A DNA stretch of 64,000 nucleotides from Octopus sinensis (GCF_006345805.1 NC_043025.1:13702001-13766000); one strand, 5' to 3'; numbered from the stretch's first letter, positions 5,467 to 57,891 are shown. Notes: generated from the letters alone by a model not told the origin. Translations and numbers: made by a program.

Positions 5467-5560
5467 AGTGAGAGTTTCCCGTTTGCGTCCGCTCGTTACA
5501 AATGTAAATCCCTGAGTTTCAATAGCAACTCCAGTTCGTTGGATATGTTCCTCGACATAC
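5467..5560 (-). CDS. Next coding exon (94 nt, phase 2 to phase 0) of the same NTPase, G2/switch I region
   Basis: Acceptor ttctctcacctgtccacag and perfect donor ACT|gtaagt. Translates G-YVEEHIQRTGVAIETQGFTFVTSGRKRETLT. The leading G completes TG|G (Trp) from the upstream exon. Spacing of G1 to the Thr in IETQGF parallels EHD proteins (GQYSTGKT...PEPTTDSF). Confidence 0.88.
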
Positions 5561-5795
5561 CTGTGGACAGGTGAGAGAAGAAGGACAATTAAACAACCAG
5601 CATACTGATAGGAGGTACGTTTATTTCTTATACTGAAAAACTGTAATTAAGTACTGGGGTCAATGTAATCGTTAGCTAAGAAACGAAGTCAGCAACGGAG
5701 GAGGATACTCTGCGAGACTAAGAATAGATTTTCTTTCTGCTTTTTTTACAACAGGAAAAATTTCTGGCTTTGAGCCTATTTTAGGAACTGTATTA

Positions 5796-5937
5796 TTAAC
5801 CCTTTCATGACCAACCTGGCTGAAACCAGCTCTGGCTCTGTAGTACAAATGTTTTGAATTAAAATCTTCCACCAAACCTTAGTCACAATTTATGTTCCTA
5901 ACACTAGCTGAATGATAACTAAGTTATTTTACTAAAT
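5796..5937 (-). mobile_element. Solo truncated copy of the TTAA-CCCTTT piggyBac-type MITE that forms the 36 kb and 53 kb arrays
   Basis: ttaaccctttcatgaccaacctggctgaaacc...ccaaaccttagtcacaatttatgttcctaacactagctg is the reverse complement of the right half of the array unit. Confidence 0.75.
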
Positions 5938-6300
5938 GCATCAAGGACTACATTATCTAATGTGCCCTTCCTTGTTGTTGTTTAGCCCCACGTCAGTTCT
6001 GATCCAGCAGACCAATGATCAAAGATGTTCCAGCTGTGACCATCCTGTCTTTTATTCAGAAATAGTGCATCAAAAACTTCATTATCTAATATGCCCTTCC
6101 TTGAGGCTGTTGTTTAGCCCCAGGCCAGGTCCATTCCAACAGTGACCATCCTGCCTTATTTAGAAACAGTGTACCTAGGTCTACATTATCTAATGTGACC
6201 TTCCCTTTTTTTTGTTAAGACTACTGTAGGCTGTGATTTGAAGGAGGGAGATTCGGCTGCTATTTCAACCAGATTTAGCAACAGAGCTGTGTAGAGGCCT
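5935..6300. repeat. Dispersed element family D (gaccatcctgtcttttattcag and ggctgctatttc modules joined)
   Basis: Contains both the ttagcccc...gaccatcctg...ctacattatctaatg module and the gtgatttga..ggagatt.ggctgctatttc module that are amplified separately in the arrays. Confidence 0.7.
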
Positions 6301-7724
6301 TCTCGTATGGGCTTGGGTCAGCTCAGTCCTATGCGGCTTGGTCATAGCTGCTCCGAGAGACCATTGACCGAAATATATTCATCAAACTATAGTGGAAGGA
6401 GGTAGAGTTGGTATGATAGAACTAGGATGGACAGGTATGTTCACATATTTCCAGTCTGTCTGTCTGTGTGACTGCACCCAGCAGCAGCAGGTGTCCACAT
6501 TCCAAAGTCTGTCAACCTGTTTCTGTTGGCTTTTTGTGGCATTTTACCAAATAACTTCCATTGGTAGACATCTGCTAACACACACACACACACACACACA
6601 TAGGAGGGGAAAAAGAGATAACATGCAGATAGGGAGTGGCTGTGTGGTAGGAAGCTTCGTTCCCAAGCACACGGTTTCAGGTTCAGTCCCACCGCGTGGC
6701 ACCTTGGGCAGGTGTCTCATACCATAGCCTCACACTGACCAAAGCCTTGGGAGTGGATTTCATAGACAGAAACTGAAAGAAGCCCATCATATATATAGTA
6801 AAGTGTCTTGCTCAAGAACACAACACAGCCTGGTCGGGGAATCGAACTTACTACCTCACGATTGGGAGCCTGATACTCTAACCACTGAGCCACGCACCTT
6901 CAGATAGACAGGAAGAGATAGATATATTTCTTTATCAGCCACACAGGGGACAAATTACAAAATAGAGCTTTTCTTTTTGGGGAGAAAAAAATAAAAAGGG
7001 ATCGCGTATCACAGAAATGTAATGATGTAAAGGGGGAAACAGATAAGGTTTATCCGTGAAAAGAAAAGCCTACAGAAAAGATCACAGTAACCTTGGTCAA
7101 TTATGTCACATGTTAGCACATTTATTTGCAAGTAACTCTCTGTTTTAACTTTTTCCAGGTTCATAGGATCATGCTCAAGGTGGCTTCGTCATTCATATGT
7201 GCCATCCTTGCTACATTCACCCATTTTTTTTTTAAAACATTCGCTAGACAAAACTTGCCTCTCTACTCTCACTTTCCTTTTCAAGTGATACTTGAAGAAG
7301 TTGATGAGAGATTGACCAGAGAGGAAAGTGTTTGTCTCCAATCCTTTCAGACGCATCCACCAGAAAGATAGATAGATGGATGGATGGATAGGGAAAGAGA
7401 TGATGGTGGTGGTGGTATTTGAAAATTACGTGGTTGATGATGGGAACATCTAAAATGAATTCTTTGGAGGAAGTCAGGTCTGCGTTAAAAGATGAGACTT
7501 TCCCATGGCCATCGCCGGCTCAGATCTCTTTATGCATATTCATGGTTTTTTTCTTTTCTTTTCTCAGAACTGAGATGACAAGAAATTGGGAGTTTCTCAT
7601 GCAACGATAAATATCCACCCCACCTTCCTGTACAACAGGTTTGTGTTTTGCTTCACTGACCCCTTTTACTTATTTGACTGTGGCCATGCTGGAGCACCTC
7701 AACATTACCTCCTTTTACTCTTTT

Positions 7725-8283
7725 AATTGTTTCAGTCATTTGACTGCGGCCATGCTGGAGCACCACCTTTAATCGAGCAACTCGACCCCAGGACTTATTC
7801 TTTTTGTAAGCCCGGTACTTATTCTATCGGTCTCTTTTGCTGAACCGCTAAGTTACGGGGGACATAAACTCACCACCATCGGTTGTCAAGCGATGTTGGG
7901 GGGATAAATACACACACACACACACACATACATATGTATATATACGACGGGCTTCTTTCAGTTTCCGTCTACCAAATCCACTCACAAGGCTTTGGTCGAC
8001 CCGAGGCTTTAGTAGAAGACACGTACCCAAGGTGCCACGCAGTGGGACTGAACCCGGGACCATGTGGTTGGTAAGCAAGCTACTTACCACACAACCACTC
8101 CTGGGCCTATACACATATACGACGGGCTTCTTTCAGTTTCCGTCTACCAAATCCACTCACAAGGCTTTGATCGACCCGAGGCTATAGTAGAAGACACTTG
8201 CCCGAGGTTCCACACAGTGGGACTGAACCCGGAACCATGTGGTTCATAAGCAAGCTACTTACCACACAGCCACTCCTGTGCCT
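7725..8283 (-). mobile_element. SINE family A copy with tandemly duplicated 5' half
   Basis: Near-full copy 7725-8103 followed by a second 5' half at 8118-8283. Confidence 0.85.
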
Positions 8284-8439
8284 ATGTTTTTAATTAACCA
8301 TGCATTATCTCATAGCTTTGAAATTTCAACGATGTGATTGTTTAGTTTTAGAAGGACATTGTAGGGTCGGTGTGAGAGGCTGGATCTGGCCAGTTTGAAC
8401 ATAAAACAGGTAGAATATAAGGGGAATTTAAATGCCGAA

Positions 8440-8513
8440 AAGATATATATCAATGAGGCAGACCTATGCTTGGTAACCACCAAGCATAGGTCTGCCTCAT
8501 TGATATATATCTT
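8440..8513. repeat. Perfect 35-bp inverted repeat with 4-nt loop
   Basis: aagatatatatcaatgaggcagacctatgcttggt - aacc - accaagcataggtctgcctcattgatatatatctt. Confidence 0.95.
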
Positions 8514-9129
8514 CTAGTCCCGTTAGAAATAGCAACCAAATCTTCCTCAAACCACACCCTGTGTTTTATCTATCTTTAGCATTCAGATTATTCTGTCAAG
8601 TGTAATATCAAGTCTTCCTGTGCATAAAACCCACCGCAATTCTGGGTCAGTTGTTGTCATCATTTAACGTCCATTTTCCCGTTCCTGCATGGGTCAGACG
8701 GAATTTGTCGAGGCAGTGTGAATGATAGAATGTGAGGGAGAATGTAAATGTGTGTGTGTGTATGAATGAAAGAACGTGTGTGTGTGTGTGTGTGTCGCGA
8801 GTAAAGAAAGAAAAAGAAAAAAAAAAACAATCAACGAACGGCCGTGTGTACGTGTATGGGAGAACGAAAGAGTAAGAATGAGCGAATGTGTGCGTGAGAG
8901 CGAGCACGTACGAGTCAGTGCCAAAATGTGTACATAAATATCTATATGTAAGAGTGAGTGAGTGTGTGTGTGTGTGTGTGTGTGTGTATAGTAGGGTTGA
9001 CATTGAAGACTGCTAAACAATGAGGAAGACACGAAAATTAGAATGAATACATTAACACAACACATAACATTACATTACACACGCTTCGACAGAGTGAATA
9101 CATTAAGAGAGTCGGGTCCGTCTCGTCTT

Positions 9130-10370
9130 CCATAATATATTTAAAAGCTCTCACTCCTTCACTATCTATCTCCCTATATAAATGTCTATCTCTCTCTTCC
9201 CTATCTATATATATGTCTATCTATCTCCCAATCTGTCTTCCAAAAATAAATACAGCCACTTTCATTCATTCTCTCCCCAAAAATAAATACGACAGTCACT
9301 CAATCTTTTGTCTTTCTTTCTGCAAAATAAATACATTATGGCACCCAGCCCCTCTCTCTCTCTCTCTCCCCTTATTCCTCTTCATAGAATCGATTCGTTA
9401 ATACCTCCTCGTTTCAGAAGCAACATAAGATTCTCTCCAAGCACCGTCTGTCTGTCAGTCTATCTATATCCATATCCATATAAATCTGTCTATCCATTCA
9501 TCAATCTATCGACGAAATGAATAAAATATTAAAACTACTTCTCTCTCTACACAAGAAATATAGGACACAAACACACACACACGCAGGCTTTCTCTCCTCT
9601 CCATCTTCATACAAAATGAATATATTAAGATTGTACTCCCTCTATCTCTCTACTCAATGAATTTGGGACACGTTCTCTCTCAATCTATCTTATAGTCGAA
9701 TACATCAAGACTCCACCACCTCTCTCTCATATGTGTATCCATCTAACTGCCTGTCTCTCTACTCAGTCTATTTAATGAATTTGGGACACACACTCTCTCT
9801 CTGTATCATTCTATCTACCTTCCCAATAGAACGAATACACACAGACACACACACACACACTCTCTCCCTACAGAATGAATACACACATGCTCTATCTTTC
9901 TACAAATTGAATATATTATAACCACCTCTTCCTTCTCTATCTATCAGTCTATCTATCTCTACTCATCAATTCCGGACGCCTTTTCCTTTCATCCACCTAC
10001 CCACCTGCAGACTAAATATACAAATACTACACCTATCTATCTATATATATCTATATACACGTCTCTCTCTCTCTCTCCTCATGAATATAATAGTCTTTCT
10101 CTTCATCCCTCCATCTACCTACCTACCAAATGAATATATAAAGACTATCTTTCTCTCGTTCTCTCTCCAGAACACATATATTAAGACACACACTCTCTCT
10201 CACTTCCCCTCCACAATAACCACATTATTAAGACACACACTCTCTCTCTCTTTGTTCCCCTCGCCCCCCCTCCACAATAACCACATTATTAAGACACACT
10301 GTCCTTTTCTATAAAATGAACACATTAACACACACACACTCGTCATCCCCCCATCGCTCTCCTCTCCACA
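9130..10370. repeat. CT/CA-rich low-complexity tract
   Basis: Interleaved (CT)n, (CTAT)n and (CA)n runs with recurrent aatgaata(c/t)a motifs. Confidence 0.7.
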
Positions 10371-11130
10371 GAAGAATTTGCAGGAAGAAGACTGAGCAAT
10401 GTCTGTCTGTATGTCACTGAATGTGTGTGTGGCTGCCTTTGCCTAATGTATTGGTGCCTCTGGTCTGAATTTGTGTGCATCTATTCATGTCTATGCGTGT
10501 GTCTGTTCACGTCTCCTCTTCATGTGTGTCTGTATGCATGTGTTCATATACGTGTGTGTACTTGTCTTCTGCTTGTGTTGTGTTGGTGAGCATATATCTG
10601 TCTTCATGTGTGCACTGTACTGTTATTTCGCTTCAGGTATGCGAAGATCCAAAAGACCTAGGATCAAACACAGTCCAACCATGACAATCCCATCTTTTAT
10701 TCATATTATACAGTAGCCAAGGTCAATCATCACTTTCTGCTGCCTCTCTCCACGCTTGCATGGTTTCGATTAATGGCAATCCTACATTCTTTAATAAAGG
10801 CAGTAAGGTGTGTGACGCGAAAATTTGGCTGTTATTTCTAGATCTTATGATCACATAAAGGCTCTCACATTCAGTCAATTTCTTTATTAAACATGAGGTT
10901 GAGAAAAAGAGGGGACAATATGAGGACAGACAAAACACATTGGGGTCAGGGTATCGAAATGGCTGTTGAATGATAGACACACAAAAATGCATAATGGATA
11001 TATACACACATACAGTATGTATATGTGAAGCTGTTTTTATACATATATATATACACACACACCTGTATACAGCCATACACAATCATATATAGTGAAAAAG
11101 AATTTACAGCATGAAGTCATAAATAATATA

Positions 11131-11498
11131 CTCTTTTACTTGTTTCAGTCATTTGACTGGTCATGCTGGAGCACCGCCTTTAGTCGAGCAAATCGACCCC
11201 AGGACTTATTCTTTGTAAGCCTAGTACTTATTCTATTGGGGTCTTTTGCCGAACCGCTAAGTTACGGGGATGTAAACACACCTGCATCGGTTGTCAAGCT
11301 ATATTGGGGGCACAAACACAGACACACAAACTTATACTCACACATACATATATACGACAGGCTTCTTTCAGTTTCCGTCTACCAAATCCACTCACAAGGC
11401 TATAGTATAAGAGAGTTGACCAAGGTGCCACGCAGTGGGACTGAACCTGGAACCATGTGGTTGGTAAGCAAGCTACTTACCACACAGCCACTCCTGCA
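11131..11498 (-). mobile_element. SINE family A, near full length
   Basis: ctcttttacttgtttcagtcatttgactg ... cacacagccactcctgc. Confidence 0.88.
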
Positions 11499-12015
11499 TA
11501 TATATATATTAAACATACATTCAACACACACACATGCACAGGGTATTTATGTTTATATAAAATGGAGAAAATTAACAGAAATAAGCAAGCAAACACACAT
11601 ACGCATTGGTGTTATTGTTTAGCCCTGCCGAAGCAAACCTATTGCCAAAGGTATCCCACCCATGACTCTCAAGTCTCAATTGTATACATAAAACAACATA
11701 TATATGTCCTTTCCGGGCAGATGATACAAAGTGATCCTAAAGAATTTAGCTATTATTTCTAGTAGGTAAAATGACCAACAAATGGTTCCCTCATTGGTTC
11801 GATTATATATACATTGTGTGGGTGGGTGTATATAGTATGTGAGAGAGAAAACGGAGGCATATAAAATTATATATATACATTACGTGGGTGGGTGTATAAA
11901 TTTGTTATGTGAGATACAACGATATAGATTATAAAATACAAACACACACACATATATATATATATTATACATATAGGTAGAAAGGAAAAGAAATTAGACA
12001 TAAAGGTATACATAG

Positions 12016-12352
12016 GTGTAGGAGTGGCTGTGTGGTAAGTAGCTTGCTTACCAACCACATGGTTCCGGGTTCAGTCCCACTGCATGGCATCTTGGGCAAG
12101 TGTCTTCTACTATAGCCTCGGGCCGACCAAAGCCTTGTGAGTGGATTTGATAGACGGAAACTGAAAGAAGCCTGTCGTATATATGTATGTGTTTGTCCCC
12201 CCCAACATCGCTTGACAACCGATGCTGGTGTGTTTACATCCCTGTAACTTAGCGGTTCGACAAAAGACGCTGATAGAATAAGTCCTGGGGTCGATTTGCT
12301 CGACTAAAGGCAGTGCTCCAGCATGGCCGCAGTCAAATGACTGAAACAAACA
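12016..12352 (+). mobile_element. SINE family A, near full length
   Basis: ggtgtaggagtggctgtgtggtaagtagc ... aatgactgaaacaaac. Confidence 0.88.
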
Positions 12353-12389
12353 GAAGAATAACTAAATCATTTAGTTGTTTTGACATCTA

Positions 12390-12466
12390 TTGCCCCCTCT
12401 TTGGAAACCCCATTATCGCCCCCACATCCCTGGAGGGGCAGTACCACTCATTTTGGGAACCACTGA
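12390..12466 (-). mobile_element. hAT/Charlie-like DNA transposon terminus
   Basis: ttttgggaaccactg is the reverse complement of CAGTGGTTCCCAAAA, a typical hAT-Charlie end. Confidence 0.45.
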
Positions 12467-12904
12467 TCTAATGTATCCTTCCTTGTCGTTGTTGTTGTTT
12501 AAGACCTCAAATTAGTTTTGATCTAACCAACCTATATGATTAACGCTGATTGCATAATTAAACTTCATGGCCGTTCCCATAACGATGCTAATTATTGACC
12601 AGAGCATGCAATTAATATCTCTTCCTGCTTCTGCCATACTTTCTCATTACCTCCAGGAGGAAATACCGTTTCCACAACTAAAAGTATTTGGTTCTTTGTC
12701 TGCAGAGAGATATCTTAAGAGGTACATCGAAAAAAGTTAGGAAAAATCTAAATGGGTCCAGGTGTGGCTATGTGGTAAGAAGCTTGCTTCCCAACCACAT
12801 GGTTCCATGTTCAATCCTACTGTGTGACACCGAGGCCAAATGTCTTCTACTGAAAGAAGCCATCATATATATATAGTGTGATAAGAAGCTTGCTTCCCAA
12901 CCAC

Positions 12905-13090
12905 ATTGGCCTCGGCAGCGGGGTGGCTGGCTGGCGATTCCTGTTGTACTCTTTCGCCCCAACTTTCTCTCTCTTCCTGTTTCTTGGGTAACGCTGCGAT
13001 GGACTGGCGTCCCGTCCAGCTGGGGGGAACACATACGCCACAGAAACTGGGAAGCCGGGCCCATGAGCCTGGCTAGGCTTGAAAAGGGTG
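12905..13090 (+). mobile_element. Body of SINE family C (V-domain-like) nested in a family A copy
   Basis: gcgatggactggcgtcccgtccag resembles the V-SINE central domain as I recall it (GCGATGGACTGGCG.CCTGTCCAGG). Homologous to 29090-29358 on the minus strand. Confidence 0.55.
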
Positions 13091-13789
13091 ACACCTTGAC
13101 CAAGTGTCTTCCAATATAGCCTTACGCTGACCAAAGCCTTGTGAGGGGATTTGGTAGATGGAAACTGAAAGAAGCCCGTTGTATAAATATATATATTTGT
13201 GTGTCTGTGTTTGTCCCCGTAACTTAGCGGTTCAGCAAAAGCGGCTGATAGAATAAGTGACAGGCTTACAAAGACTAAGTGCTGGGGTAAAGGTGGTGCT
13301 CCAGCATGGCCACAGTCAAATGAGTGAAACAAGTGTCCTTTGTAGTAAGTGTAAACTAGGGATGTCTGCATAACGAGAGGGTTTTTATTTTCAAAGCCAC
13401 GGGGTAAAACTGCTTTCCGCAGTTAACAGGAATAAAATTCTGAGCAGACGTATCCGGTTTCAGCATTCAAAGGTTTAATGAGGATTTCATCAAGTGGAGA
13501 AAAAAATAAAAACAGTAAGAATTAACAGCAACTGGTGTCACTTAATTGTATATGTGTGGTTAGGTGAAAATGAGGTGTGGTCTAACGACAGGAAATCATT
13601 TTAAATGATCCACCGTGTCTAAAAGAAAAAAAAAATAACTGTTTTTATTTTTCTTGAGAAAGTCTTGCCTTGAGAGATTCTTGTAAACATCCACATCATC
13701 TATGGAAACTTATCTATGACACAACCTGAATTGTATAAAGCAGTGGCTCTCAACTATTTTTGAGAAGACCCAGCAAGCCAAATGAGACC

Positions 13790-14270
13790 ATAACCTCATG
13801 GCCTATGCCAGGGGCGCAACCAGCCCACTTATGCGTAACCTTTCCTTCATTGGACACTAAACTCTGCTTGTGAAGACCTGTTGAGGCAAGTGAAATCAAA
13901 ATCGAAATTTGATGACTGGCATCCATGCTAGCGAGGTGCAAAGAGCACCATACGAGTGTGATCGTTGACAGAGCGGCTAACCGGCTTCCGTGCCAGTAGC
14001 ACATAAAAGTCACCAGCATCACCTTACTGGCACTCGAGCCCCGTGCTAGTAGGGTGCCATGAGCACTATCCAAGGGTGATTGTTACCAGCATCGCCTTAC
14101 TGGCACGTGTAAAAAGATTCGAACGAGGTCGTTGCCAGTACTGCCTGACTGGCCCCCATGCTGGTGGCACGTAAAAAACACCCACTACACTCTCAGAGTG
14201 GTTGGTGTTAGGAAGGGCATCCAGCTGCAGAAACTCTGCCAGATCAAGATTGGAGCCTGGTGCAGCCATC
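13790..14270 (+). mobile_element. RTE-tail element (aggaagggcatccagc family)
   Basis: Repeated ggcacgtaaaa modules and cactacactctcagagtggttggtgttaggaagggcatccagctg. Confidence 0.7.
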
Positions 14271-14490
14271 CTTAAACAACCCTTATTCAGGGACCTTTTG
14301 AGCAGGATGGGTTACTCGACCAGAAGAAAATTCTAACTGGGCCCCACCTGCAAGGTCATGTGCTGTTTATCTTGATATGGGATCACCACGTCACACATAT
14401 ATGGTTGTGTCTGGTGTACCCTTATCAGACAGGTAGTCATTATGGGTATACTGGGCTTCCTATATTTAACCCCAGTGTCATACACTGCTC
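14270..14490 (-). mobile_element. Interspersed repeat E, inverted relative to 16912-17130
   Basis: cttaaacaacccttattcagggacc...ctgggccccacctgcaagg...gggtatactgggcttc. Confidence 0.75.
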
Positions 14491-16911
14491 TCTCACTCAA
14501 TAATAATAATCCTTTTTCCTAGGGCACAAGACCTAAAATTTTGGGCAGGGGGATAAGCTGATTACATTGACCCTGGTGTTCAACTAGTACTTATTTCATT
14601 GACCTCGGCAGCATTTGAACTCGGAACATAAAGATGGATAAAATGCCGCTAAGTACTTTGCCCGGCGTGCAAACTATTCTGCCAGCTCACCGGTTTAATA
14701 ATAATAACAATGGTTTCCTTCATTTGTCACCAGTACAATACAAAAAGAAAATAATAAAACCAAAAAATAAAAATGCCATTGTGAAATTGAGGCTAATAAG
14801 AATTCTCAAATTACAACGATGATGGCTACGATACTAACAGTGAAATAACAAGAACAACAAGAACGGAAGGTTCCTTCATTAGCTACAAGAGGGCACAAAT
14901 AATTTGCCAGCCATTCATTAATATCCAATGAGCAAAAAACAAAAAAGAAAGATAAAAATACAGGAAAAGAATAAAAAAAAAAAGCAACTTATGCTTCTAT
15001 TATAAATCTTTAATTTTTAATGCAACGCATTGTATCAGCAAACACATGAATTATTGACAAACTGCATAATAACAATAATAATAATGAATAAAAATAATAA
15101 TTATGATGACAATGACAAAACTATAATGATGGTATAGTGGTTTTCTATTTCGCTAGGCGCAACAGCAGCCCCTGTAGCAATGACAGCAGCACTAGCATTA
15201 GTAGTAGTACTAGCAGTAACACTACCACAACAATGGCTTCTGCTGCTGCTGCCACAACAGCATTTAATCATTAAAGACACAGTCTGTTGTTTTTCTAATT
15301 CATATACAGAAAATTTCCTACATAGTAGTAGTAGCAGTAGTAGTTGCTATTTAGCCCCCCCCCCCCCCAACGAGTTAGTTCTGATCGGAGACATTCCAGC
15401 CATGATCATCCAGTATGTCTTTTATGTGGTTTTGCTCTCGATGTCTACCCTGCACCGAATCCACCCTCCCTCTATGGCTACACCGGAAAAAAAAATGTGT
15501 CTTTTTCTGTAATTAAAAAGACGAAATGTTAAGGTGCAATAATGAGGACCAACACTAGGCTGCTATTTCTAGCGAACTTGAGTGACCATACAAAAGCAAC
15601 ACCACCAACACTTTTCAAAAACATGCTTGTATTGTAATGGAATGTTTCACTTGACCTTGTGTCAAGATTAACAACAACAACAATAATAATAATAACAACC
15701 CTTTGTACAAAAACGGGAGGATGAAAAACAAAAAATAATAACCTTTTCTACTGAAGGCACAAGGCCTGGTCGATTACATTGACCCCAGTACACAACTGGT
15801 ACTTAATTTAACAACACCAAAAGGATGAAAGACAAAGTGGACCCTGGTGGAATTTGAACTCAGAACATAGCGACAGGCAAAATACCTATTTCTTTACTAC
15901 CCACAAGGACAGACAAATGGATTAAGTCGATTATATCGACCCCAGTATGTAACTGGTACTTATTTAATCGCCCCTGAAAGAATGAAAGGCAAAGTTGACC
16001 TCACAATCACAAGGTTGTAAGTTCAATTCGCAAACCAGGCAGTGTGCTATGTTCTTGAGCAAGACACTTTATTTTCATGTTGCTCCAGCTAACTCAGCTG
16101 TAGGAATGAAATGCAATGTCACAGATGCCAAGCTGTATCGGCCCCTTTGCCTTGGACATCAGCGGAGGCTGGTATTCCAGAAACAACCCTGCACACACTT
16201 GTGCCTTGTATAGGAACTTTCTAGGTGCAATCCCATGGTCATTCATAACCAAAGAGGGTCTCTACCCTACCCTTTTACCACATGGACCATCACCAACAGA
16301 TTTGGTACCTTTTTTTTAATGAGGCTGGAGAGACTACAAAAGCTGCTCAAAAACACAGAACAAGGATCATTTCAAAGGTTCTCGACATCTAAGGAACTAA
16401 GTCCTGACTTGGTAACCCGGCCCTTAATTCCGAATGTAATACACCTGTCCATACAGTTAAATAGCAATAATCCTTTCCAACTTTGGCACAAGGCCAGCAA
16501 TATAAGGGGAAGGCAGTCAGTTGATTATACTGACCCCAGGGTTCAACTAGTGCTTAATTTATCGACCCTGAGAGAGTGAACCACAAAGCTGACCGTGGTT
16601 GGATTTGAACTAAGAATGCAAAGAACTGGTAAAAAGTGTTGCAAGTATTTTATCCAACAATCTAACATTTCTGCCAGCTCAACACTATAATAATAATGCC
16701 AGTACTGCCTAACCGTCCTCTGTGCAGGTGGCACGTAAAAAGCACCCACTACATTCTCAGAGCGGTTGGCGTTAGGAAGGGCATCCAGCTGTAGAAACTC
16801 TGCCAGATCAGATGGGATGTTGGGTGCAGCCTTCTGGTTCGCCAGCCCTCAGTCAAAATTGTTCAACCCATGCTAGTATAGAAAGCAGACGTTAAATGAT
16901 GATGGCCATCA

Positions 16912-17410
16912 AAGTGACACTAGGGTACAAATATATGAAGCCCAGTATACCCATCATGACTACCCGTCTGATAAGGGTACACCAGGCACATGCATCACAA
17001 CCATATGTGCACCACATGGTGATCCCATATCAGGATAAACAGCGCATGACCTTGCAGGTGGGGCCCAGTTAGAATTTTCTTCTGGTCGAGTAACCCATCC
17101 CACTCAAAAGGTCCCTGAATAAGGGTTGTTTAAGGTTGTTGAACGAACCACCCATGTTTCCAGAGGTGAATTATCCAAACCCCCAAAGAATCCCTTTCAA
17201 CACATGGCTATGATGCTCCCCCACTACTTCTGCTCGTGATCAGAGATGCATATATCGTCAGTCACTAAAGGACATGCTCAACTGGTTAAGGTCAAACAAC
17301 TGACAAGCAAATCTGTGGTATTGAGCAGAATATTTGCTGTAGCCCATCTTTTATACCAAGACAAAACAATGTACATGATAACACTTCCAATCAGAAGCCA
17401 CTGTCTGGTA
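16912..17410 (+). mobile_element. Interspersed repeat E, longer copy
   Basis: gaagcccagtatacccatcatgactacc...ggggcccagttagaattttcttctggtcgagtaaccc...aagggttgtttaagg. Confidence 0.7.
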
Positions 17411-17607
17411 CAGCATAATAATAATGATGATGATTTCAAATTTTTGCCACAAGGGCAGCAATCTTGGGGGAGGGGATAATTCGATTATATCAATCCCAGT
17501 ATTCAACTGGTACTTATTTTATTGACCTCAAAAGGATATGTTGACCATGGCGGAATTTGAACTCAGATCATAGCTATGGGTGAAATGCCGCAATAATAAT
17601 ACAGTTC

Positions 17608-44906: not shown

Positions 44907-44938
<32 letters not shown>

Positions 44939-45034: not shown

Positions 45035-45075
<41 letters not shown>

Positions 45076-45350: not shown

Positions 45351-45384
<34 letters not shown>

Positions 45385-45480
45385 GCTAGCATGAAAAACG
45401 GACGTTAAACGATGATGATGATTGATATATAATATATGTGGGTGTGTATATATATATATATATGCGTGTTGGCATATATA
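44560..45480. repeat. (TACA/TA/CA)n block with a 408-bp-spaced duplicated RTE-tail remnant
   Basis: gctagcat(a/g)aaaaacggacgttaaacgatgatgatgattgatatataatatatgtgggtgtg occurs at about 44978 and 45386. Confidence 0.85.
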
Positions 45481-47520: not shown

Positions 47521-47675
47521 CTTGAGGAAAATTCTTAAAACTGCTGTAGTGTGTGTGAAAGGCAACGAGCACCGTCCTGGCTTCTTCACTCAGGAATATT
47601 GTTTCTTCCATACACAACACACCCATTTCCATTACTACCAATACAAGTCACATACCAGCATTATATATATACTCC

Positions 47676-47880
47676 TTTACTACCCACAAGAGACTAAACA
47701 CAGAGGGGACAAATAAGGACAGACAAACGGATTACGTCGACCCCAGTGCGTAACTGGTACTTAATTTATCGGCCCCCGAAAGGATGAAAGGCAAAGTCGA
47801 CCTCGGCGGAATTTGAACTCAGAACGTAACGGCTACACATTTCGCCCAGCGTGCTAACGTTTCTGCCAGCTCGCCACCTT
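47676..47880 (-). mobile_element. SINE family B, full length
   Basis: Reverse complement of 34571-34786. Confidence 0.85.
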
Positions 47881-47900
47881 TACCAGCATATATATATATA

Positions 47901-48700
47901 CTCTTTTACTTGTTTCAGTCATTTGACTGTGTGGCCATGCTGGAGCACCGCCTTTTAGTCGACCAAATCGACCCCGGGACTTATTCTTTGCAAGCCTAGT
48001 ACTTATTCTATCGGTCTCTTTTTGCCGAACCGCTAAGTAACGGGGACGTAAACACACCAGCATCGGTTGTCAAGCAATGCTAGGGGACAAACACATACAT
48101 ATATACGACGGGCTTCTTTCAGTTTCCGTCTACCAAATCCACTCACAAGGCTTTGGTCGGCCCGAGGCTACAGTAGAAGACACTCGCCCAAGGTGCCACG
48201 CAGTGGGACTGAACCCGGAACCATGTATATACGTATACTCTTTTACTTCTTTCAGTCATTTGACTGTGTGGCCGTGCTGGAGCACTGCCTTTTAGTCGAC
48301 AAAATCGACCCCGGGACTTATTCTTTGTAAGCCTACTACTTATTCTATCGGTCTCTTTTTGCTGAACCGCTATGTTACAGGGACGTAAACACACCAACAT
48401 CGGTTGTCAAGCGATGTCGGGGGGACAGACACAGATATACACACATATCTTCTGTGCCGGTGGCACATAAAAAGCACCAACCGATCATGGCCGATGCCAG
48501 CTAGCATGGAAAAATGGACATTAAATGATGATGATATATATGACGGGCTTCTTTCAGTTTCCGTCTACCAAATCCACTCATAAGGCTTTGGTCGGCCCGG
48601 GGCTATAGTAGAAGACACTTGCCCAAGGTGCCATGCAGTGGGACTGAACCCGGAACCATGTGGTTGGTAAGCAAGCTACTTACCACACAGCCACTCCTGT
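47901..48700 (-). mobile_element. Cluster of SINE family A copies with an RTE-tail piece
   Basis: Copies at about 47901-48225, 48237-48430 and 48540-48700. Confidence 0.85.
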
Positions 48701-49026
48701 GTTTTAACAATTCTGCAGGCTCGCTGCTTAACAATAATCTACTATAATAACACTCATGTGTATTTCTCCATCACAACATATGACTGAGAAAGGAAGGGGT
48801 GATGGCAAACTTGGTAGTGGGACAATGGAAGTTCTGTGGTGAAAAGAAAATCAAACAGCGTTTCAACTCTGATTAAGTATATATGTGTGTATGTAAAAGG
48901 GAGTCATGTGAATGTGTGTGTGTGCAATGGAAGTGATATGGTGAATATTCAATGCCGAAAAGAAAAACCAAACAGCGTTTCAACTCTGTGTGAGTGTATG
49001 TGTACAATGGAAGCATGTGAATGTTT

Positions 49027-49388
49027 GTGGCAAGTAGCTTGCTTACCAACCACATGGTTCCAGGTTCAGTCCCACTGCGTGGAACCTTGGGCAAGTGTCT
49101 TCTTCTATAGCCTCGGGCCGACCAATGCCTTGTGAGTGGATTTGGTAGAGGGAAACTGAAAGAAGCCTGTCGTATATATATATATGTATGTGAGTGTGTG
49201 TTTGTCCCCCCAACATGGCTTGACAACCGATGATGGTGTATTTACGTCCCCGTAACTTAGCGGTTCGGCAAAAGAGACCGATAGAATAAGTACTCGGCTT
49301 ACAAAGAATAAGTCCTGGGGTCGATTTGCTCGACTAAAGGCGGTGCTCCAGCATGGCCACAGTCACATGAATGAAACAAGTAAAAGAA
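49027..49388 (+). mobile_element. SINE family A, near full length
   Basis: gtggcaagtagcttgcttaccaacc ... gaaacaagtaaaaga. Confidence 0.88.
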
Positions 49389-49397
49389 TTTTGTACC

Positions 49398-49620
49398 TTA
49401 TTACCCCCGCCTTAGCAAAGGTGGAGGTATTGTTTTCAGTTGCATCTGTTTGTTTGTCCGTGGACAAGATATCACAAGAACCGCTGGATGGATTTAGATG
49501 AAACTTTCAGGAATATTTGGACTCGTGACTGGCACGAGCCGATTAGATTTTGGGTTCAATCCTGTACCAGACCAAGATTCTAGATTATTTTTCCTGTTTT
49601 TTTACTTAATTTTTGAAAGC
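49398..49620 (+). mobile_element. Helentron-associated (HINE/DINE-like) non-autonomous element
   Basis: ttattacccccgccttagcaaaggtggaggtattgttttc...gtttgtttgtcc...ccgctggatggatttagatgaaacttt matches my recollection of that family's architecture; not verified. Confidence 0.45.
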
Positions 49621-50689
49621 AGTCAGGTTCATTTTTAGGCTTTGGTTGGTCCAAGATTATAGAAGACATTTGCCCAAGGTGCCACACAGTGGAACTGAAC
49701 CTGGAACCCTGTGATTGGGAAGCAAGCTTCTTACCACACAGCCATGCCTGCACCTACATATATTCTATGCTTGCAAAACAACAAATGAAACAGAGTACAG
49801 GACGTACTTTGCTGTAACAACCATTGCACGTCCAAGTACGACACAGCTTTCTGCTTCGCCACCCCATATGCATAGAGTGCTAGACATTCGTCTCCACATC
49901 CAGCGCCACAACTGTTATCACCACCATCACAATATAGAAGAGGCAAATGACATTCTTCTTCACTGCAACCACCCCCATCACCACACACACCCTTCTTCTA
50001 CTCTTCCCCCCAATAGCTATTAAACATCTGACTCACAACCTGACAGCATGTACCACAACTGGCATTGCAAGAGACACACACAAAATACCAGAGTACACAT
50101 ACGCACATTCACAGCACTACACACACACACACACACAGACTACAAGCTTACAGAAACCAATTTATCAGCCATGTGTCTCTGAAATCATATCCTACTCTCT
50201 TAAAGAACACATTAGATAATGTAGTCCTAGATACACTATGTCTAAATAAAAGACAGGGATGGTCACAGCTGGAACAGGACTGACCTGGGGCTAAACAACA
50301 ACAAGGAAGGACACATTTGATAATGTAGTCCTAGATACACTATGTCTAAATAAAAGACAGGGTGGTCACAAATGGAACATTTTTGATGGATTGAGGCTGA
50401 CCTGGGGCTAAACACCATACCATGTACACACACACAACAAGTTACAGTAACATACAAAGCCAGATAGACACACACACAAGCAAATGCAAAGACATATACA
50501 GAGAGACAGAGGATTAGATGCACATACATACGCAAACAAGACTAAACAAACACATACACAGATATAGACTCATGTACACTCCCACACACAGACAGAAGAC
50601 CAGATATACATACACAAACACACAGAGGTGTATGTGGATATAGAAACAGACAAAGGCTGGCAGTACAAAGAACAACAGGAAGGTGAGAC

Positions 50690-52760
50690 AAGATGTTCTG
50701 AAGGAAATCATCAGAAGATCGGAGCAGGATGGAATAGGAATGGTTTCGTAATGGAGAAGAAAGGCAAAGAGAGAGAGAAAGGTGACGTTTAGGAGAATTA
50801 AACGATAATTGATGGAGCGAAAGAGATGAAAATTGGCGATAAGAAGGGATTAGGGGAAGGAAAAAAACCGAAGAAAGTTACTGAAATGGATAAAAATTGA
50901 TGGGAAAAATGGACGGACGATAATGGATAGGGAAGAAGAGTTAATGGGAAAATGGGGGAGAGTTTAGGTGGAAGGGAGGGAAATGAAGGAAAATGGGTGA
51001 AAATTAAATGAGAAGGTCAATGCATTCGTGAAAATCCATAAAAAATGAATGCAAAATCAATAGAAAATGGATGAAAGTTAATGAAGATGACAAAATATTT
51101 GGGGAAAAGAATGTAAATTGAATGAAAAAGACAAAACATTAAGAAAAAATCTATAAAAAATGAGTGAAAATCAACGAAAAAATATTCATGAATGAAAATT
51201 GAATGACAGAGAGGGGATTAGATGAAGAAAAAGTGATGAAAATATTGAAATTGGATGAAAAGTGATAAAAACATTGGATGGATGATAATGGCTGGAGAAG
51301 GAAAGTTATTGAGAAAATAGGGGGAAACTGGAAAAACGTGGCAGTATTTCGGATGAGAGGAGGGAAATGAAAGACGAAGGAATGAAAAGCGAATGAAATT
51401 GACAAAATATTCATTAAAATCTACGAAAAAATAAATGGAAATTGAATGAAAATTTATTAAAATCCAAGAAAGACGGAGGAAAATGACAAAATCGGTCTCC
51501 TCAATCACAACTGACCACGGGCTAAACAACAGCAACAGGGGAGGATGTATTAGATAATGTAGAACTCTTTTACTTGTTTCAGTCATTTGACTGTGGCCAT
51601 GCTGGAGCACCGCCTTTAGTTGAGCAAATCGACCCCAGGACTTATTCTTTGTAAGCCTATACTTATTCTATCGGTCTCTTTTGCCAAACTGCTAGATGAC
51701 AGGGACGTAAACATACCAGCATCAGTTGTCAAGCGATATTGAGGGGGACAAACACATATAAATGATGGGGCTTCTTTCAGTTTCCATCTACCAAATCCAC
51801 TCACAAGGCTTTGGTCAGCCTGAGGCTATAGCAGAAGACACTTGGCCAAAGTGCCACACAGAGGGACTGAACCCAGAACCATGTGGTTGGTAAGCAAGCT
51901 TCTTACCACACAGCCACTCCTACGCCTATATATACACACATACATAGTAATGAACTTAATGTATATAGTGCTCAGGTGCACAACTCATCAAAAAAGGTAG
52001 TCAAAAGTGCAAAGAACATGCACGTGAAGAGAAAAGTGAATGAGTTGTTAAAAAAAGGTGGGGTAGAGGACATCAGGTGTGCTATTGTCATATTTCAGGA
52101 AGCATGTAAGTTTTCAACAAAGTAGTCATGAAAATTCATTCAAAATGAATGAAATTCATTGGAAATTGAATGAAAATGACAAGATTATTTGTAAAAATGA
52201 GGGAAAAAAATTAACAAAACTGTAATCAAACGACTGAAAATGGCAAAGAATTTGTGAGAAACCATTAAAAATTTATGAAAAGCACAAACATACACACACA
52301 CAGATATAAATATGCACACATACATACACATATACAAAGATTTAGACAAACACACACATGCAGACGTGCACATACAAAAATTGATGGAAATAAGAAAATA
52401 TTTGTGAAAATTGAATGAGACTGATAAAATATTCAAGAAAATCTATGAAAAAATGAATGAAAATTGATGAAACCAACAAAGTATTCATAAAAAACTGTAA
52501 AAAAATGCATGAATATTTGATGGAAATTGAATAAAACAACAATATATTCATGGAAAGTTAATATAATTTGATGAAAATGACAAATTAATCAAGAAGATTT
52601 ATGGAAATGGATAAAAACAGCAAAATATTCATGAAAATTGGATGTTGATTTGATGGAAATTTATGCAAATGACAAATTATTCATGTAAATTTATGAAGAA
52701 TGTTATTAAAATACATTCAAAAATGGTTACAAGAAGAGAAGAGAAAGAAATGGATGCAAA
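50690..52760. repeat. About 2-kb A/G-rich, C-poor low-complexity tract interrupted by a SINE A (51563-51925)
   Basis: Recurrent gaaaatt/aatgaa motifs and strong strand skew. Confidence 0.75.
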
Positions 52761-52978
52761 TTGAGTATGAGAATAATTGAAAGGTTTAAGGATGGCGGCA
52801 GAGGTTAATAAGTACAGCAAATCCATCAGGAATAACTATAAGAGTAGAAATAGGGACTGTCATAGGAGAATTCTGGACACTCCCATGTGGCTGAACATGG
52901 ACTAACCGATTATAATCAAAAAGAACTGAGTGAACCATCAAGTGGGGGAGTTGACCATGTTGGTTTAACTATGTTCGT

Positions 52979-55200
52979 TTAACCCTTTCGTTACTGTATT
53001 TATTTTGAGATGCTCTGTGTTTCTTTGAATTACTTTAAATATAACAAAGAATTTAGTGAAATAACTTAGTTATCATTCAGCCAGTGTTAGGAACATAAAT
53101 TGTGACTAAGGTTTGGTGGAGGATTTTAATTCAAAACTTATGAAAACAAGACATTTGTACTACAGATCCAGAGGTGGTTTCAACCAGGTTGGTATCAAAA
53201 GGGTTAAGAATTGTTTCTCTATTATATATCTTAACCCTTTTGTTACCATATTTTTGTTGAGATGCTCTGTGTTTCTTTCAATTACTTTCAATATAACAAA
53301 GAATTTGGTAAAATAACTTCGTTATCATTAAGCTAGTGTTAGGAACATAAATTGTGACTAAGGTTTGGTGGAAGATTTTAATTCAAAACTTATGAAAACA
53401 AGACATTTGTACTACAGAGCGAGAGGTGGTTTCAGCCAGGTTGGTATCAAAAGGGTTAAGAATTGTTTCTCTATTATATATCTTAACCCTTTTGTTACCA
53501 TATTTTTGTTGAGATGCTCTGTGTTTCTTTCAATTACTTTAAATATAACAAAGAATTTAGTAAAACAACTTAGTTATCATTCAGCTAGTGTTAGGAACAT
53601 AATTGTGACTAAGGTTTCGTGGAAGATTTTAATTCAGAACTTACGAAAACAAGACATTTGTACTACAGAGCCAGAGGTGGTTTCAACCAGGTTGGTAACG
53701 AAAGGGTTAAGAATTGTTTCTCTATTATATATCTTAACCCTTTTGTTACCATATTTCTTCTGCTGAGTTGCTCTGTGTTTCTTTGAATAAATTTTAAATA
53801 TAACAAAGAATTTAGTCAAATAACATAAATTGTGACTAAGGTTTGGTGGAAGATTTTAATTCAGAACTTATGGAAACAAGACATTTGTACTACAGAGCCA
53901 GAGGTGGTTTCAGCCAGGTTGGTATCAAAAGGGTTAAGAATTGTTTCTCTATTATATATCTTAACCCTTTTGTTACCATATTTCTGTTGAGATGTTCTGT
54001 GTTTCTTTCAATTAATTTTAGATATAACAAAGAATTTAGTAAAATAACTTAGTTATCATTCAGCTAGTGTTAGGAACATAAATTGTGACTAAGGTTTCGT
54101 GGAAGATTTTAATTCAGAACTTACGAAAACAAGACATTTGTACTACAGAGCCAGAGGTGGTTTCAACCAGGATGGTATCAAAAGGGTTAAGAATTGTTTC
54201 TCTATTATATATCTTAACCCTTTTGTTACCATATTTCTTCTGAGATGCTCTGTGTTTCTTTGAATAAATTTTAAATATAACAAAGAATTTAGTCAAATAA
54301 CATAAATTGTGACTAAGGTTTGGTGGAAGATTTTAATTCAGAACTTATGGAAACAAGACATTTGTACTACAGAGCCAGAGGTGGTTTCAGCCAGGTTGGT
54401 ATCAAAAGGGTTAAGAATTGTTTCTCTATTATATATCTTAACCCTTTTGTTACCATATTTCTTCTGCTGAGTTGCTCTGTGTTTCTTTCAATTAATTTTA
54501 GATATAACAAAGAATTTAGTAAAATAACTTAGTTATCATTCAGCTAGTGTTAGGAACATAAATTGTGACTAAGGTTTGGTGGAAGATTTTAATTCAGAAC
54601 TTATGAAAACAAGACATTTGTACTACAGTGCCAGAGGTGGTTTCAACCAGGTTGGTATCAAAAGGGTTAAGAATTGTTTCTCTATTATATATCTTAACCC
54701 TTTTGTTACCAGATTTCTTCTGCTGAGATGCTCTGTGTTTCTTTGAATAAATTTTAAATATAACAAAGAATTTAGTCAAATAACATAAATTGTGACTAAG
54801 GTTTGGTGGAAGGTTTTAATCCAAAACTTTTGAAAACAAGACATTTGTTCTAAAGAGCCAGAGGTGGTTTCAACCAGGTTGGTATCAAAAGGGTTAAGAA
54901 TTGTTTCTCTATTATATATCTTAACCCTTTTGTTACCATATTTCTGTTGAGGTGTTCTGTGTTTCTTTCAATTACTTTAAATATACCAAAGAATTTAGTA
55001 AAATAACTTAGTTATCATTCAGCTAGTGTTAGGAACATAAATTGTGACTAAGGTTTGGTGGAAGATTTTAATTCAGAACTTACGAAAACAAGACATTTGT
55101 ACTACAGAGCCAGAGGTGGTTTCAGCCGGGTTGGTCACGAAAGGGTTAACCCTTTCGTTACTGTATTTGTTTTGAGATGCTTTGTGTTTCTTTCAATTAA
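52979..55200. repeat. Tandem array of piggyBac-type MITE plus spacer, 9 full units, alternating long/short higher-order repeat
   Basis: ttaacccttt starts at about 52979, 53231, 53483, 53734, 53961, 54214, 54438, 54694, 54921 and 55146. Units end aaagggttaa; the spacer is gaattgtttctctattatatatc. Confidence 0.95.
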
Positions 55201-56097
55201 TTACATGTTTGTTCCCCTACCACCACCACTTGACAACCAATGCTGGTGTGTTTATGTCCCCGAAACTTAGTGGTTCAGCAAAAGAGACCAAATAGAATAA
55301 GTACCAGGCTTACAAAGAATAAGCCCTGGGATCAGTTAGTTCGACTAACGGCGGTGCTCCAGCATGGCCGCAGCCAAACGACTGGAACCAGTCACAGAAT
55401 AAAATAACAAAAAAATAAATGTATAGGAAAACAAACAAATAAAGAGATAAAATAACTAAATAAACGGTAAAACGAAATGACTCTAGGCTACGATACTTAC
55501 CTCGTCCACCCTCCAACTACAAACTTCATACATTGCACAAAGAAAAGTTTATATGAAAGGCAGAAGAAAAAAAAAAGAAATATTAAAAAAAACCTTGAAA
55601 AAAAATCTAAAAGAAATAAATTTACGCAAGAGGAAACACACAGGATTGAAAGTAAATTTGATACATCAAGGATAACAATGGCGACATTGACATCCACACC
55701 ATCGTTATCTAACCTGGTGTTTCTTAACCTTTTGACCCTTGCGTAACCCTTAAAATAAATTACATGCATCAAGGAACCCCAGCACAAAGGGAAAATTAGA
55801 TACGATATCTTGCTCTGTTGAGATGTTTTGGAAGAATAACATGTGATAACCCCTAACGATATGTCTTTTTTTTTTACTCCTTTGACTAGATTTTGCCTGA
55901 TAAAATGTTTTAATTACTGGAATTTAATTCTTTTTGGAGCAAAATCGAAACAGCTGTAAGAAAACATGTTTAATTTTTGCAGGTAATAAATTATATTAAT
56001 GCTTCTTCTCCAATTTCTGGATTTTAATTTGAATATTTATACTTAAACCTATTATTTTAGGAATACTACAATTCACAACAAAATAAAAACTAACAAA

Positions 56098-56471
56098 TAT
56101 GCAGGAGCGGCTGTGTGGTAAGTAGCTTGTTTACTAACCACATGGTTCCAGGTTCAGTCCCACTGCGTGGCATCTTGGGCAAGTGTCTTCTACTATAGCC
56201 TCGGGCCGACCAAAGCCTTGTGAGTGGATTTGGTAGACGGAAACTGAAAGAAGCCCGTCGTATATATATATGCGTGTCTGTGTTTGTCCCCCTAGCATTG
56301 CTTGACAACCAATGCTGGTGTGTTTATGTCCCCGTCACTTAGCGGTTCAGCAAAAAGAGACCGATAAAATAAGTACTGGGCTTACAAAGAATAAGTCCCA
56401 GGGTCGAGTTGCTCGATTAAAGGCGGTGCTCCAGCATGGCCGCAGCCAAATGACTGCAACAAGTAAAAGAG
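56098..56471 (+). mobile_element. Full-length SINE A flanked by a 54-bp direct repeat
   Basis: 56044-56097 equals 56472-56525 with one mismatch. Confidence 0.92.
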
Positions 56472-57019
56472 TAAACCTATTATTTTAGGTATACTACAAT
56501 TCACAACAAAATAAAAACTAACAAACAAATAAATATATATATCATTCGCCATCCACTACACATCCTTTTTTTCTCTCCTTGTTCCTTTCTGTGGAAGAGC
56601 GTACGCGCGAAACGTTACAAACATTTTCACTTCCTGAGTGTTATACTAATACATCTGTTTGTTGTCTACACCACCTGTCTTTGTCTTTGGTATTTTTTTG
56701 TGAATTCTCCCCCTATATGTAAATATAGGGTGTCCATAGATTACAGAGATCACTAAATACATTCCCAATGGTTGTTATATTTTTTGATAACATAATAAGT
56801 TAGATAGGAAGATTACAATAACCGTGGCACGTAAAAAGCACCAACCAATCGTGGCTGCTGCCAGAAAAGACTGGAGCCTGGTGCCGCCTCCTGGTTTCCT
56901 AGACCCCGGTCGAACTGTCCAACCCATGCTAGCATGGAAAACGGGCCTTAAACAATGATGAGTATGTTGTGCATGCTTAGTAATATTACGATCATGAAAT
57001 TAGCATTAGCTTATCTCAC

Positions 57020-57078
57020 GGAACCCCTAGGAACCTTTTGCAGAACCCTAGGGTTCCAAGGAACCCTGGTTGAGAAAC
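57020..57078 (-). mobile_element. hAT-like MITE terminus
   Basis: Reverse complement gtttctcaaccagggttccttggaaccctagggttc. Confidence 0.4.
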
Positions 57079-57776
57079 GTTGATCTAATCAGAGGGAATC
57101 TATTTTGGCAGATTTTTCAACAGCTGGATGCACTTCCTGTCAACAACCTTCAAGCAAGCAAGGTAATATTTCCCCATGACCGGACATGTCTTTCAGGGAA
57201 GACAGGGCAACAAACAAGACTGCTAGACATGGAGACATACAAACACACACAAGCATATATACATATATAGTTTTTTTTATTCTCTTACTTGTTTTAGTCA
57301 ACTGACTGCAGCCATGCTGGAGCACTGCATTAAAGGATTTTAATCGAACAAATAGTACTTCTTCTATCGGTCTCTTTTGCTGAACTGCTAAGTTACAGGG
57401 ATGTAAACACGCCAACACCAGTTGTCAAGCAGTCATTGGGGGACAAACAAAGACACACGCGATGGGCTTCTTTCAGTTTCCGTCTACCAAATCCATGAAC
57501 ATTTTAACAGTGCTTTTTATGTGACACCAACACCAGCACTGATTCTCTTTACATGCCATGAAATATGGTAAAGAGCTGGAACAAATAGCCCCAGACCTAT
57601 CTTACCGATGCTCTGGCGAATCTACTAATTGAATCCCCTTATTGTTTTTGCCCCAAGGATGGGGCGAAACAGTGTATGAAGAAAATAATAAATTGGAAAG
57701 CGAACATATTTTGAAATTGAAGCAGAGTAAAAAAAAAAAGACAAAATGGGGAACTGCAAAATATGTCGGTACCTAC

Positions 57777-57891
57777 CAGTTGATGAAAGAACTTTTTCCA
57801 GCTGAATGGTTGCCAATTAAAAGAATGCTGATTTTCTTCCGCGGTGCCAATAATGGCAAGTTGAGCTGCTGCTCGGCTATCTTCACCAACC
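57777..57891 (-). CDS. Coding exon (115 nt, phase 1 to phase 2) containing the P-loop/G1 motif of an EHD/sarcalumenin-like dynamin-superfamily NTPase
   Basis: Minus-strand acceptor tctcttggtttcttctttcag and donor TG|gtaggt. Translates (G)LVKIAEQQLNLPLLAPRKKISILLIGNHSAGKSSFIN-TG, with a GxxxxGKS Walker A after a hydrophobic strand. Not shown in this frame in the ORF track. Confidence 0.9.

Follow-up and report, generated by a model that had tools for sequence, protein, structure and literature searches.

Predicted exons 2 and 3 of an experimentally uncharacterised EHD-branch NTPase gene, separated by a 52-kb repeat-filled intron in Octopus sinensis

Sarcalumenin belongs to the EHD/sarcalumenin branch of the dynamin superfamily, and in the bacterial homologues closest to EHD and sarcalumenin, the GTPase domain is followed by a transmembrane helix pair; a eukaryotic family combining a G domain with two transmembrane helices was not described in that study (PMC7016017). 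In atlastin, mitofusin and BDLP, transmembrane sequences lie at the stalk tip. The N-terminal helices of EHD2 contribute to its helical bundle, and Ser41 of dynamin binds the catalytic monovalent cation (PMC5084822). In the literature that we found, the zebrafish gene si:ch211-11k18.4 is present as an entry in an eye-expression table, with sarcalumenin as its best human match (E=2e-05; PMC3530609). A 2026 review of EHD proteins gives five zebrafish EHDs, and si:ch211-11k18.4 is not among them (PMC13282721). Here, we analysed a 64,000-nucleotide stretch of Octopus sinensis DNA (GCF_006345805.1 NC_043025.1:13702001-13766000), hereafter the window, which carries an orthologue of si:ch211-11k18.4. 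Very probably, the window holds exons 2 and 3 of this orthologue, a member of an EHD-branch family, and the intron between the two exons has been inflated by repeats.

An earlier note on the window had proposed two exons with canonical splice sites, located 52 kb apart and joined at TG|G; the coordinates, borders and frame were all confirmed (Table 1). On the minus strand, exon A is bordered as ttctttcag|GGTTGGTG...ATCAACTG|gtaggt, its 5' end being also given as ttctttcag|GGTTGGTGAAG. Exon B is bordered as ctgtccacag|GTATGTCGAG...CTCACT|gtaagt, its 5' end being also given as ctgtccacag|GTATGTCGAGGAA. The AG and GT borders make all four splice sites canonical. The joined exons, read in frame 3, provide a stop-free peptide of 69 residues, LVKIAEQQLNLPLLAPRKKISILLIGNHSAGKSSFINWYVEEHIQRTGVAIETQGFTFVTSGRKRETLT, in which the Trp codon is divided as TG|G, exon A supplying the final TG and exon B the first base G. 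The product of exon A is (G)LVKIAEQQLNLPLLAPRKKISILLIGNHSAGKSSFINW, containing the P-loop (G1) motif GNHSAGKS. The GG at the start of exon A finishes a Gly codon whose first base lies in an upstream exon, beyond the window. After the Trp, exon B encodes YVEEHIQRTGVAIETQGFTFVTSGRKRETLT, which contains the switch I (G2) segment AIETQGF, and its 3' end falls on a codon boundary (phase 0). The claim that neither exon appears in the open reading frame (ORF) track stood for one exon only: exon A is found as a TTG-started ORF of 38 residues once short ORFs are listed, whereas exon B has no in-frame start codon and is absent from the short-ORF listing.

The joined peptide was submitted to homology searches, which the earlier note had named as a check. 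It scored 28.1 bits against the Pfam family Dynamin_N (PF00350), above the gathering threshold of 27. A search of a collection of 5.8 billion proteins resulted in 294 matches at E<=1e-3, the best being a hypothetical protein of the bivalve Mya arenaria (88% identity, E=4e-30). All matches in this first search were fragments of at most 121 residues, and the full-length members were taken from an exhaustive search of cluster representatives, which returned 641 of them (best E 1.7e-30). Fish proteins were about 80% identical to the peptide. Among 45 diverse family members, 24 columns in this region are at least 80% conserved, and the peptide keeps the majority residue at all 24, including those of the P-loop region GNHSAGKSSFINWY and of the switch I segment AIETQGF. 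Homologues from transcriptomes and from genomes without this intron run continuously across the junction as …GKSSFINWYVEEHVQRTGVAIETQGF… (...SSFINWYVEEH...).

When 80 full-length homologues were compared with the window by tblastn, matches were found at exons A and B only, with adjacent and colinear residues; in P0123, for example, residues 39-76 match exon A and residues 75-108 match exon B. The Pfam score, the 294 and 641 matches, the 24 of 24 conserved columns and the homologues that are continuous across the junction place the partnership of the two exons well beyond chance. Predicted exons A and B are thus consecutive parts of one protein-coding gene, in agreement with the earlier proposal that they encode adjacent parts of one protein. 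No further family exon was detected in the window by tblastn, either with 120 fragments at E<=10 or with the 80 full-length homologues; the N-terminal exon (M...NERILKECHxLYT...), the next downstream exon (GNATLHLYPHFKPL...) and the G3 and G4 exons were all missing from it. This places the whole window inside the gene.

For comparison of the gene structure, we mapped the exons of the zebrafish orthologue (P0370, si:ch211-11k18.4) at its locus, L001. Zebrafish exon 2 is bordered as ttgtag|GACTAATAAAA...ATCAATTG|gtacgc and encodes residues 40-77, and exon 3 is bordered as ttgcag|GTATGTGGAGGAG...CTCACT|gtaaat and encodes residues 78-108. All four exon borders and their phases are identical in the window and in zebrafish: a Gly codon split 1+2 opens exon 2, the Trp codon is split as TG|G, and phase 0 follows ...SLT. 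Identity over the 69 residues is about 80% for the zebrafish protein and its orthologues, and the window peptide keeps all conserved residues. The intron between exons 2 and 3 has 118 bp in zebrafish versus 52,216 bp in the window, a difference of about 440-fold. Gene-caller ORFs on other contigs run into the same borders, ...R|YVEEH at the acceptor and ...INW|SV and ...SLT|VS at the donors (for example, P0106, P0111, P0112, P0113, P0116, P0117 and P0119), which indicates that the intron position is widespread. The Trp-splitting intron is missing in P0002, P0121 and P0028. The intron after ...SLT appears to be more widespread than the Trp-splitting one and is present, for example, in the Ephydatia protein P0010.

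Two other explanations of the exon pair were considered. In the first, exons A and B would come from two different gene copies, in tandem or partly assembled, and the 52 kb would not be one intron. The interval is indeed very long and rich in repeats, and some fish carry paralogues, such as the Silurus LOC124396408 cluster. However, no other family exon lies between or beside A and B, not even the N-terminal exon or the easily detected G3 exon of 45 residues; order, strand and phases agree exactly with the consecutive exons 2 and 3 of zebrafish; and the window is free of gaps, so that we regard two copies as very unlikely. In the second, the exons would be relics of a pseudogene that is no longer spliced or translated, an idea that draws on the remainder of the gene lying outside the window. 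Against it, both exons are open with every splice site canonical, and the retention of all 24 conserved residues, together with identities of 88% (bivalve protein) and about 80% (fish proteins), is unexpected after a loss of constraint; a pseudogene has, in our view, very little chance of being the right explanation. The preferred reading, two exons of one gene, is the one followed below.

The full-length relatives of this gene have about 430-510 residues, typically about 450, and are named in their sources as "uncharacterized protein si:ch211-11k18.4", "Dynamin N-terminal domain-containing protein" or "G domain-containing protein". The named members among vertebrates are from teleosts, gar and hagfish; among arthropods, from a mite, a planthopper, a leafhopper and a springtail; and among other animals, from a bivalve, a sponge and Oikopleura. 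The holozoan protists are represented by the filasterean Pigoraptor and the choanoflagellate Hartaetosiga, and the other eukaryotes by the amoebozoan Clastostelium, the oomycete Aphanomyces, the green algae Tetraselmis and Chlorokybus, Rhodomonas and Hemimastix. The family is pan-eukaryotic. With a fish protein as the query, the named proteins among the best 120 matches were all from teleosts, with no mollusc orthologue among them, and the rest were from unnamed contigs. Paralogues occur in some fish, the Silurus cluster being an example.

Seven entries (P0122, P0125, P0147, P0157, P0291, P0327 and P0343) are among those named "EH domain-containing protein 1/2/3/4". We judge these names to be wrong, since the family members have no EH domain; they look like propagated misannotation. 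Pfam detected Dynamin_N and MMR_HSR1 only in the full-length members, with Dynamin_N scores of 32-39 bits for full-length orthologues; in five full-length members, no match was obtained to EH or EF-hand-type, EHD_N or EHD helical-domain families. The earlier description of the family as poorly studied holds, given the "uncharacterized" database names, a mention restricted to an expression table and its omission from the EHD review. No functional study of any member was found in the literature, including "EHD-like" and dynamin-superfamily surveys. The family is already predicted by databases in many genomes, and the window gene is a new orthologue in an experimentally uncharacterised family.

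Motif counts were taken from an alignment of 45 family sequences (A1). In G1, G-N-H-S-A-G-K-S-S, the residues G, S, G, K and S are present in 45/45. Switch I reads A-I-E-[T/S]-Q-G-F, with Thr in 39 sequences and Ser in 6. The G3 motif is D-[T/S]-P-G-L-V-D-G, where D is kept in 44, P in 45, G in 44, L in 41, D in 43 and G in 41 of the 45, and G4 is [S/T]-K-A-D (Ser in 32, Thr in 12). The segment FFDPxGQALCxR is a further family signature. By these motifs, the members are predicted EHD-branch nucleoside triphosphatases (NTPases) with intact, nearly invariant nucleotide-binding motifs. Most of 41 members scanned have two hydrophobic segments of 19 residues, near positions 325-345 and 385-403, with Kyte-Doolittle means of 1.6-2.9. 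The N-termini are short, with about 40-60 residues ahead of the G domain. An N-terminal hydrophobic segment was found in only 1/41 members (P0195), and a signal peptide is therefore unlikely in the family.

The family profile was compared with the PDB, and a predicted fold was compared with the same database by Foldseek. EHD2 was matched at 2e-16 by the profile and at 5.9e-15 by Foldseek, and EHD4 at 9e-14 and 3.9e-15, respectively. The next profile match was Campylobacter DLP (5e-4; Foldseek about 1e-10), followed by mitofusin 1 (0.16; about 1e-10) and dynamin (0.23; 1e-9 to 1e-8). Mitofusin 2 and BDLP were not listed by the profile at E<=1, and their Foldseek values were about 1e-10 and about 1e-9. 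By profile and predicted fold, the closest solved relatives of the family are EHD2 and EHD4, and the gene family is part of the EHD branch of the dynamin superfamily. The earlier note had called the product EHD/sarcalumenin-like without being EHD or sarcalumenin itself, and this proved accurate: any dynamin-type protein other than EHD2 and EHD4 was matched by the profile at 5e-4 or worse, Foldseek gave the same order, and no EH domain was present. In the profile alignment, AIE--TQGF of the family stands opposite GPEptTDCF of EHD2; by this alignment, exon A carries the P-loop and exon B the G2/switch I threonine. The proposed split of the two motifs, with GNHSAGKS in one exon and the Thr in the other, is thereby borne out.

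Structure prediction of a full-length protein, also proposed earlier as a check, was carried out with AlphaFold2 on a fish member with alignment A1, and the model thus represents the fish and not the Octopus protein. It was confident (mean predicted local distance difference test score, pLDDT, 91.9; predicted template modelling score, pTM, 0.83), and EHD4 and EHD2 were its top Foldseek matches. The model has two N-terminal helices (residues 22-47), then the G domain at about 59-240, and then a 77-residue helix (268-344), at whose end lies the first hydrophobic segment. Next come helices 347-374 and 378-402, the latter corresponding to the second of these segments, and the last helix, 411-443, is C-terminal. 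The modelled orthologue is thus predicted to have the dynamin-type layout, in which a helical bundle or stalk comes after a large G domain.

Compared with the known systems, EHD1-4/RME-1 (PDB 2QPT, 4CID, 5MTV, 5MVF and 7SOX) provide the nearest G domain (profile 2e-16, fold about 4e-15) and share with the family a Ser at the third variable position of the P-loop. Helices ahead of the G domain are present in the family model as in EHD2, a comparison of their position. However, the family lacks the EH domain, which is C-terminal in animal EHDs and binds NPF motifs, and the EHD-specific Pfam domains, and in place of the polybasic lipid-binding helix of EHD there are two hydrophobic, transmembrane-like helices. 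The P-loop is GNHSAGKS in the family and GQYSTGKT in EHD2 in the profile alignment, G4 is [S/T]KAD in the family versus NKAD in the one EHD2 sequence aligned, and identity in the Foldseek structural alignment with EHD is about 16-17%. Among human proteins, BLAST matches the zebrafish member best to sarcalumenin, although weakly (PMC3530609). Sarcalumenin is characterised by a signal peptide and a luminal, acidic Ca-binding region ahead of its G domain. The family sequences appear to differ in this N-terminus, with a hydrophobic segment there in a single one of the 41 members scanned. Mitofusin/Fzo1, atlastin, BDLP and Campylobacter DLP1/2 resemble the predicted overall layout of the family, with an N-terminal large G domain, a helical stalk whose tip carries hydrophobic or transmembrane helices, and a helix at the C-terminus that runs back towards the G domain. 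Mitofusins and bacterial DLPs form the second Foldseek tier (about 1e-10), whereas the sequence similarity of mitofusin and dynamin is marginal (Mfn1 0.16, dynamin 0.23) and the family protein is much smaller, with about 450 residues.

The weakest alternative, in which the gene would be a genuine EHD of the RME-1/Past1 type or an orthologue of sarcalumenin, has in its favour the EHD names on several entries and EHD2 and EHD4 as the closest solved structures, but it is most improbable: true EHD identity was rejected on the missing EH, EHD_N and EHD helical domains of the full-length members, the two hydrophobic C-terminal helices that EHDs lack, the low structural-alignment identity and the different P-loop, and sarcalumenin identity was rejected on the lack of the signal-peptide-like N-terminus that a luminal protein needs (P0195 being the one member with such a segment) and on the E-value of only 2e-05 between the zebrafish and human proteins.

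Relatives of the EHD-branch family were also found in bacteria by a prokaryote scan that used one genome per species. Fourteen loci (L002-L015) in metagenome-assembled genomes (MAGs) of Planctomycetota and Granulosicoccaceae encode proteins of 475-492 residues. They carry GTFSxGKSSF[IV]NW, DSPGFD, FFDARHPEP, LNQxDT and two C-terminal hydrophobic segments. The fish protein matched one of them over residues 40-376 with 25% identity (BLASTP E=3e-14); the same bacterial protein matched EHD4 at 6e-4 only, and the fish protein matched EHD4 at 4e-10. The bacterial proteins resemble the family in the GKSSF[IV]NW P-loop region, the DSPG of G3, a coiled-coil stretch and the two C-terminal hydrophobic segments. 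They differ in the NQxD of G4 and the GNQAVDD of switch I, and all of them are from metagenome bins. With two helices after the G domain, they agree with the account in PMC7016017 of the bacterial homologues nearest to EHD and sarcalumenin. The eukaryotic family probably has its bacterial counterparts in these proteins. No viral relative was found in IMG/VR contigs. The two transmembrane-like helices of the family and the bacterial counterparts with the same layout had gone unseen in the earlier note.

Regarding mechanism, the family, whose range extends from green algae and Hemimastix to fish and molluscs, is predicted with high confidence to consist of EHD-like NTPases anchored in a membrane. 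The two hydrophobic helices would enter the membrane as a hairpin at the end of the stalk, by analogy with atlastin, mitofusin and BDLP. The G domain would face the cytosol, given that an N-terminal hydrophobic segment is confined to one of the 41 members. Nucleotide-dependent dimerisation of the G domains would then tether, fuse or reshape the host membrane. At the third variable position of the P-loop, which corresponds to dynamin Ser41, the family has an invariant Ser, and this suggests monovalent-cation-assisted catalysis of the dynamin type. The G4 motif of dynamin is TKxD, and EHDs use ATP; the [S/T]KAD of the family, which resembles the former, might favour GTP. As a more tentative and rather doubtful extension, the EHD/sarcalumenin branch could have this family as its third ancient lineage in eukaryotes, one that kept the bacterial layout of G domain, stalk and hairpin and would act as a "mini-mitofusin/atlastin" tethering or fusion NTPase. 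The origin of this third lineage would probably lie in the last eukaryotic common ancestor. The family may have been overlooked as the standard models appear to lack it, judging by the weak sarcalumenin match that is the best human one. If the extension is true, the product is a small membrane-anchored NTPase on some organelle, with the ancestral layout retained. The fusion and fission enzymes of the dynamin superfamily are few and each is important, so a widely conserved, unstudied family is a reasonable target.

Several points weigh against the reading as a whole, from the exon pair to the membrane activity. The repeat-rich intron could be misassembled, although the window contains no N, and it is comparative evidence that supports the predicted splicing across 52 kb. 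The window covers 69 residues only, and the stalk, hydrophobic helices, G3 and G4 are known from the orthologues. The hydropathy and the AlphaFold model are also compatible with a monotopic paddle of hydrophobic helices, and the remodelling or tethering activity is proposed by analogy only, experiments on family members not being found in the literature. The window itself gains an annotation, in which two real exons are assigned to a conserved gene, and offers an example of an ancient intron inflated by repeats.

Table 1. Coordinates of the exons, introns and repeats in the window, and of two example bacterial loci (positions of the latter are those within the named locus)
Feature	Position	Strand	Description	Basis
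Exon A (family exon 2)	57891..57777	minus		sequence and splice sites; translation; tblastn with 80 homologues; zebrafish exon 2 borders
Exon B (family exon 3)	5560..5467	minus		sequence and splice sites; translation; tblastn; zebrafish exon 3 borders; EHD2 switch I alignment
Intron between A and B	5561..57776	minus	52,216 bp, phase 2, GT..AG	repeat scans; ORF and Pfam scans; zebrafish length
Upstream intron, partial	57892..64000	minus	at least 6.1 kb	tblastn, no family match here; SINE map
Downstream intron, partial	1..5466	minus	at least 5.4 kb	tblastn, no family match here
SINE-like element, reference copy	7940-8115		other copies, e.g. 5046-5389, 37726-38309, 57938-58035	
Satellite, unit about 252-256 bp	36057-36967 and 52979-55149		two arrays about 16 kb apart, in intron	
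Satellite, 183/364 bp	38836-39756		97-98% matches, in intron	
Tandem array, 113 bp	41206-42441 (113-bp satellite at 41.5-42.4 kb)		about 8 copies, 98% matches, plus 450-bp higher-order period	
GA-rich purine low-complexity block	45778-47589 (44-48 kb generally)		GC skew +0.33, AT skew +0.26, strand-asymmetric	
(ATAC/ATAT/ACAC)n-type microsatellite/minisatellite blocks	20314-21546 and 43506-45384			
Bacterial relative, locus L008	2860-4287	plus		
Bacterial relative, locus L015	2818-4296	plus		

The 52-kb intron is filled with repeats and is unremarkable for a repeat-rich animal genome. An ancient intron of the 118-bp class would have been inflated about 440-fold to its present length by these repeats. 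A short interspersed nuclear element (SINE)-like element of about 170 bp occurs about 45 times, as copies or fragments in either orientation with 77-97% identity, between window positions 1064 and 62441. Neither ARAGORN nor Rfam recognised the element, and a literature search for its core sequence gave no match; no Rfam families or tRNAs were found in the window. There was no sign of a nested gene in the intron: the long ORFs are of low complexity or SINE-derived, and the ten least repetitive had no Pfam match. The purine-rich block yields a spurious ORF of 603 residues on the minus strand, rich in Ser, Leu and Pro, and the (ATAC/ATAT/ACAC)n blocks give many overlapping spurious ORFs of 150-270 residues.

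Some of the SINE-like copies are tandem pairs, and the fragment at 57938-58035 stops 47 nt upstream of the exon A acceptor. The SINE and the repeat load presumably look cephalopod- or mollusc-like. In the 252-256-bp satellite, the first array has 98% matches, and the second also shows a higher-order period of 480 bp. A 69-bp array (62942-63117 and 63346-64000) that looks related to the 183/364-bp satellite runs past the window end, and the two may belong to a single repeat family, oriented oppositely.

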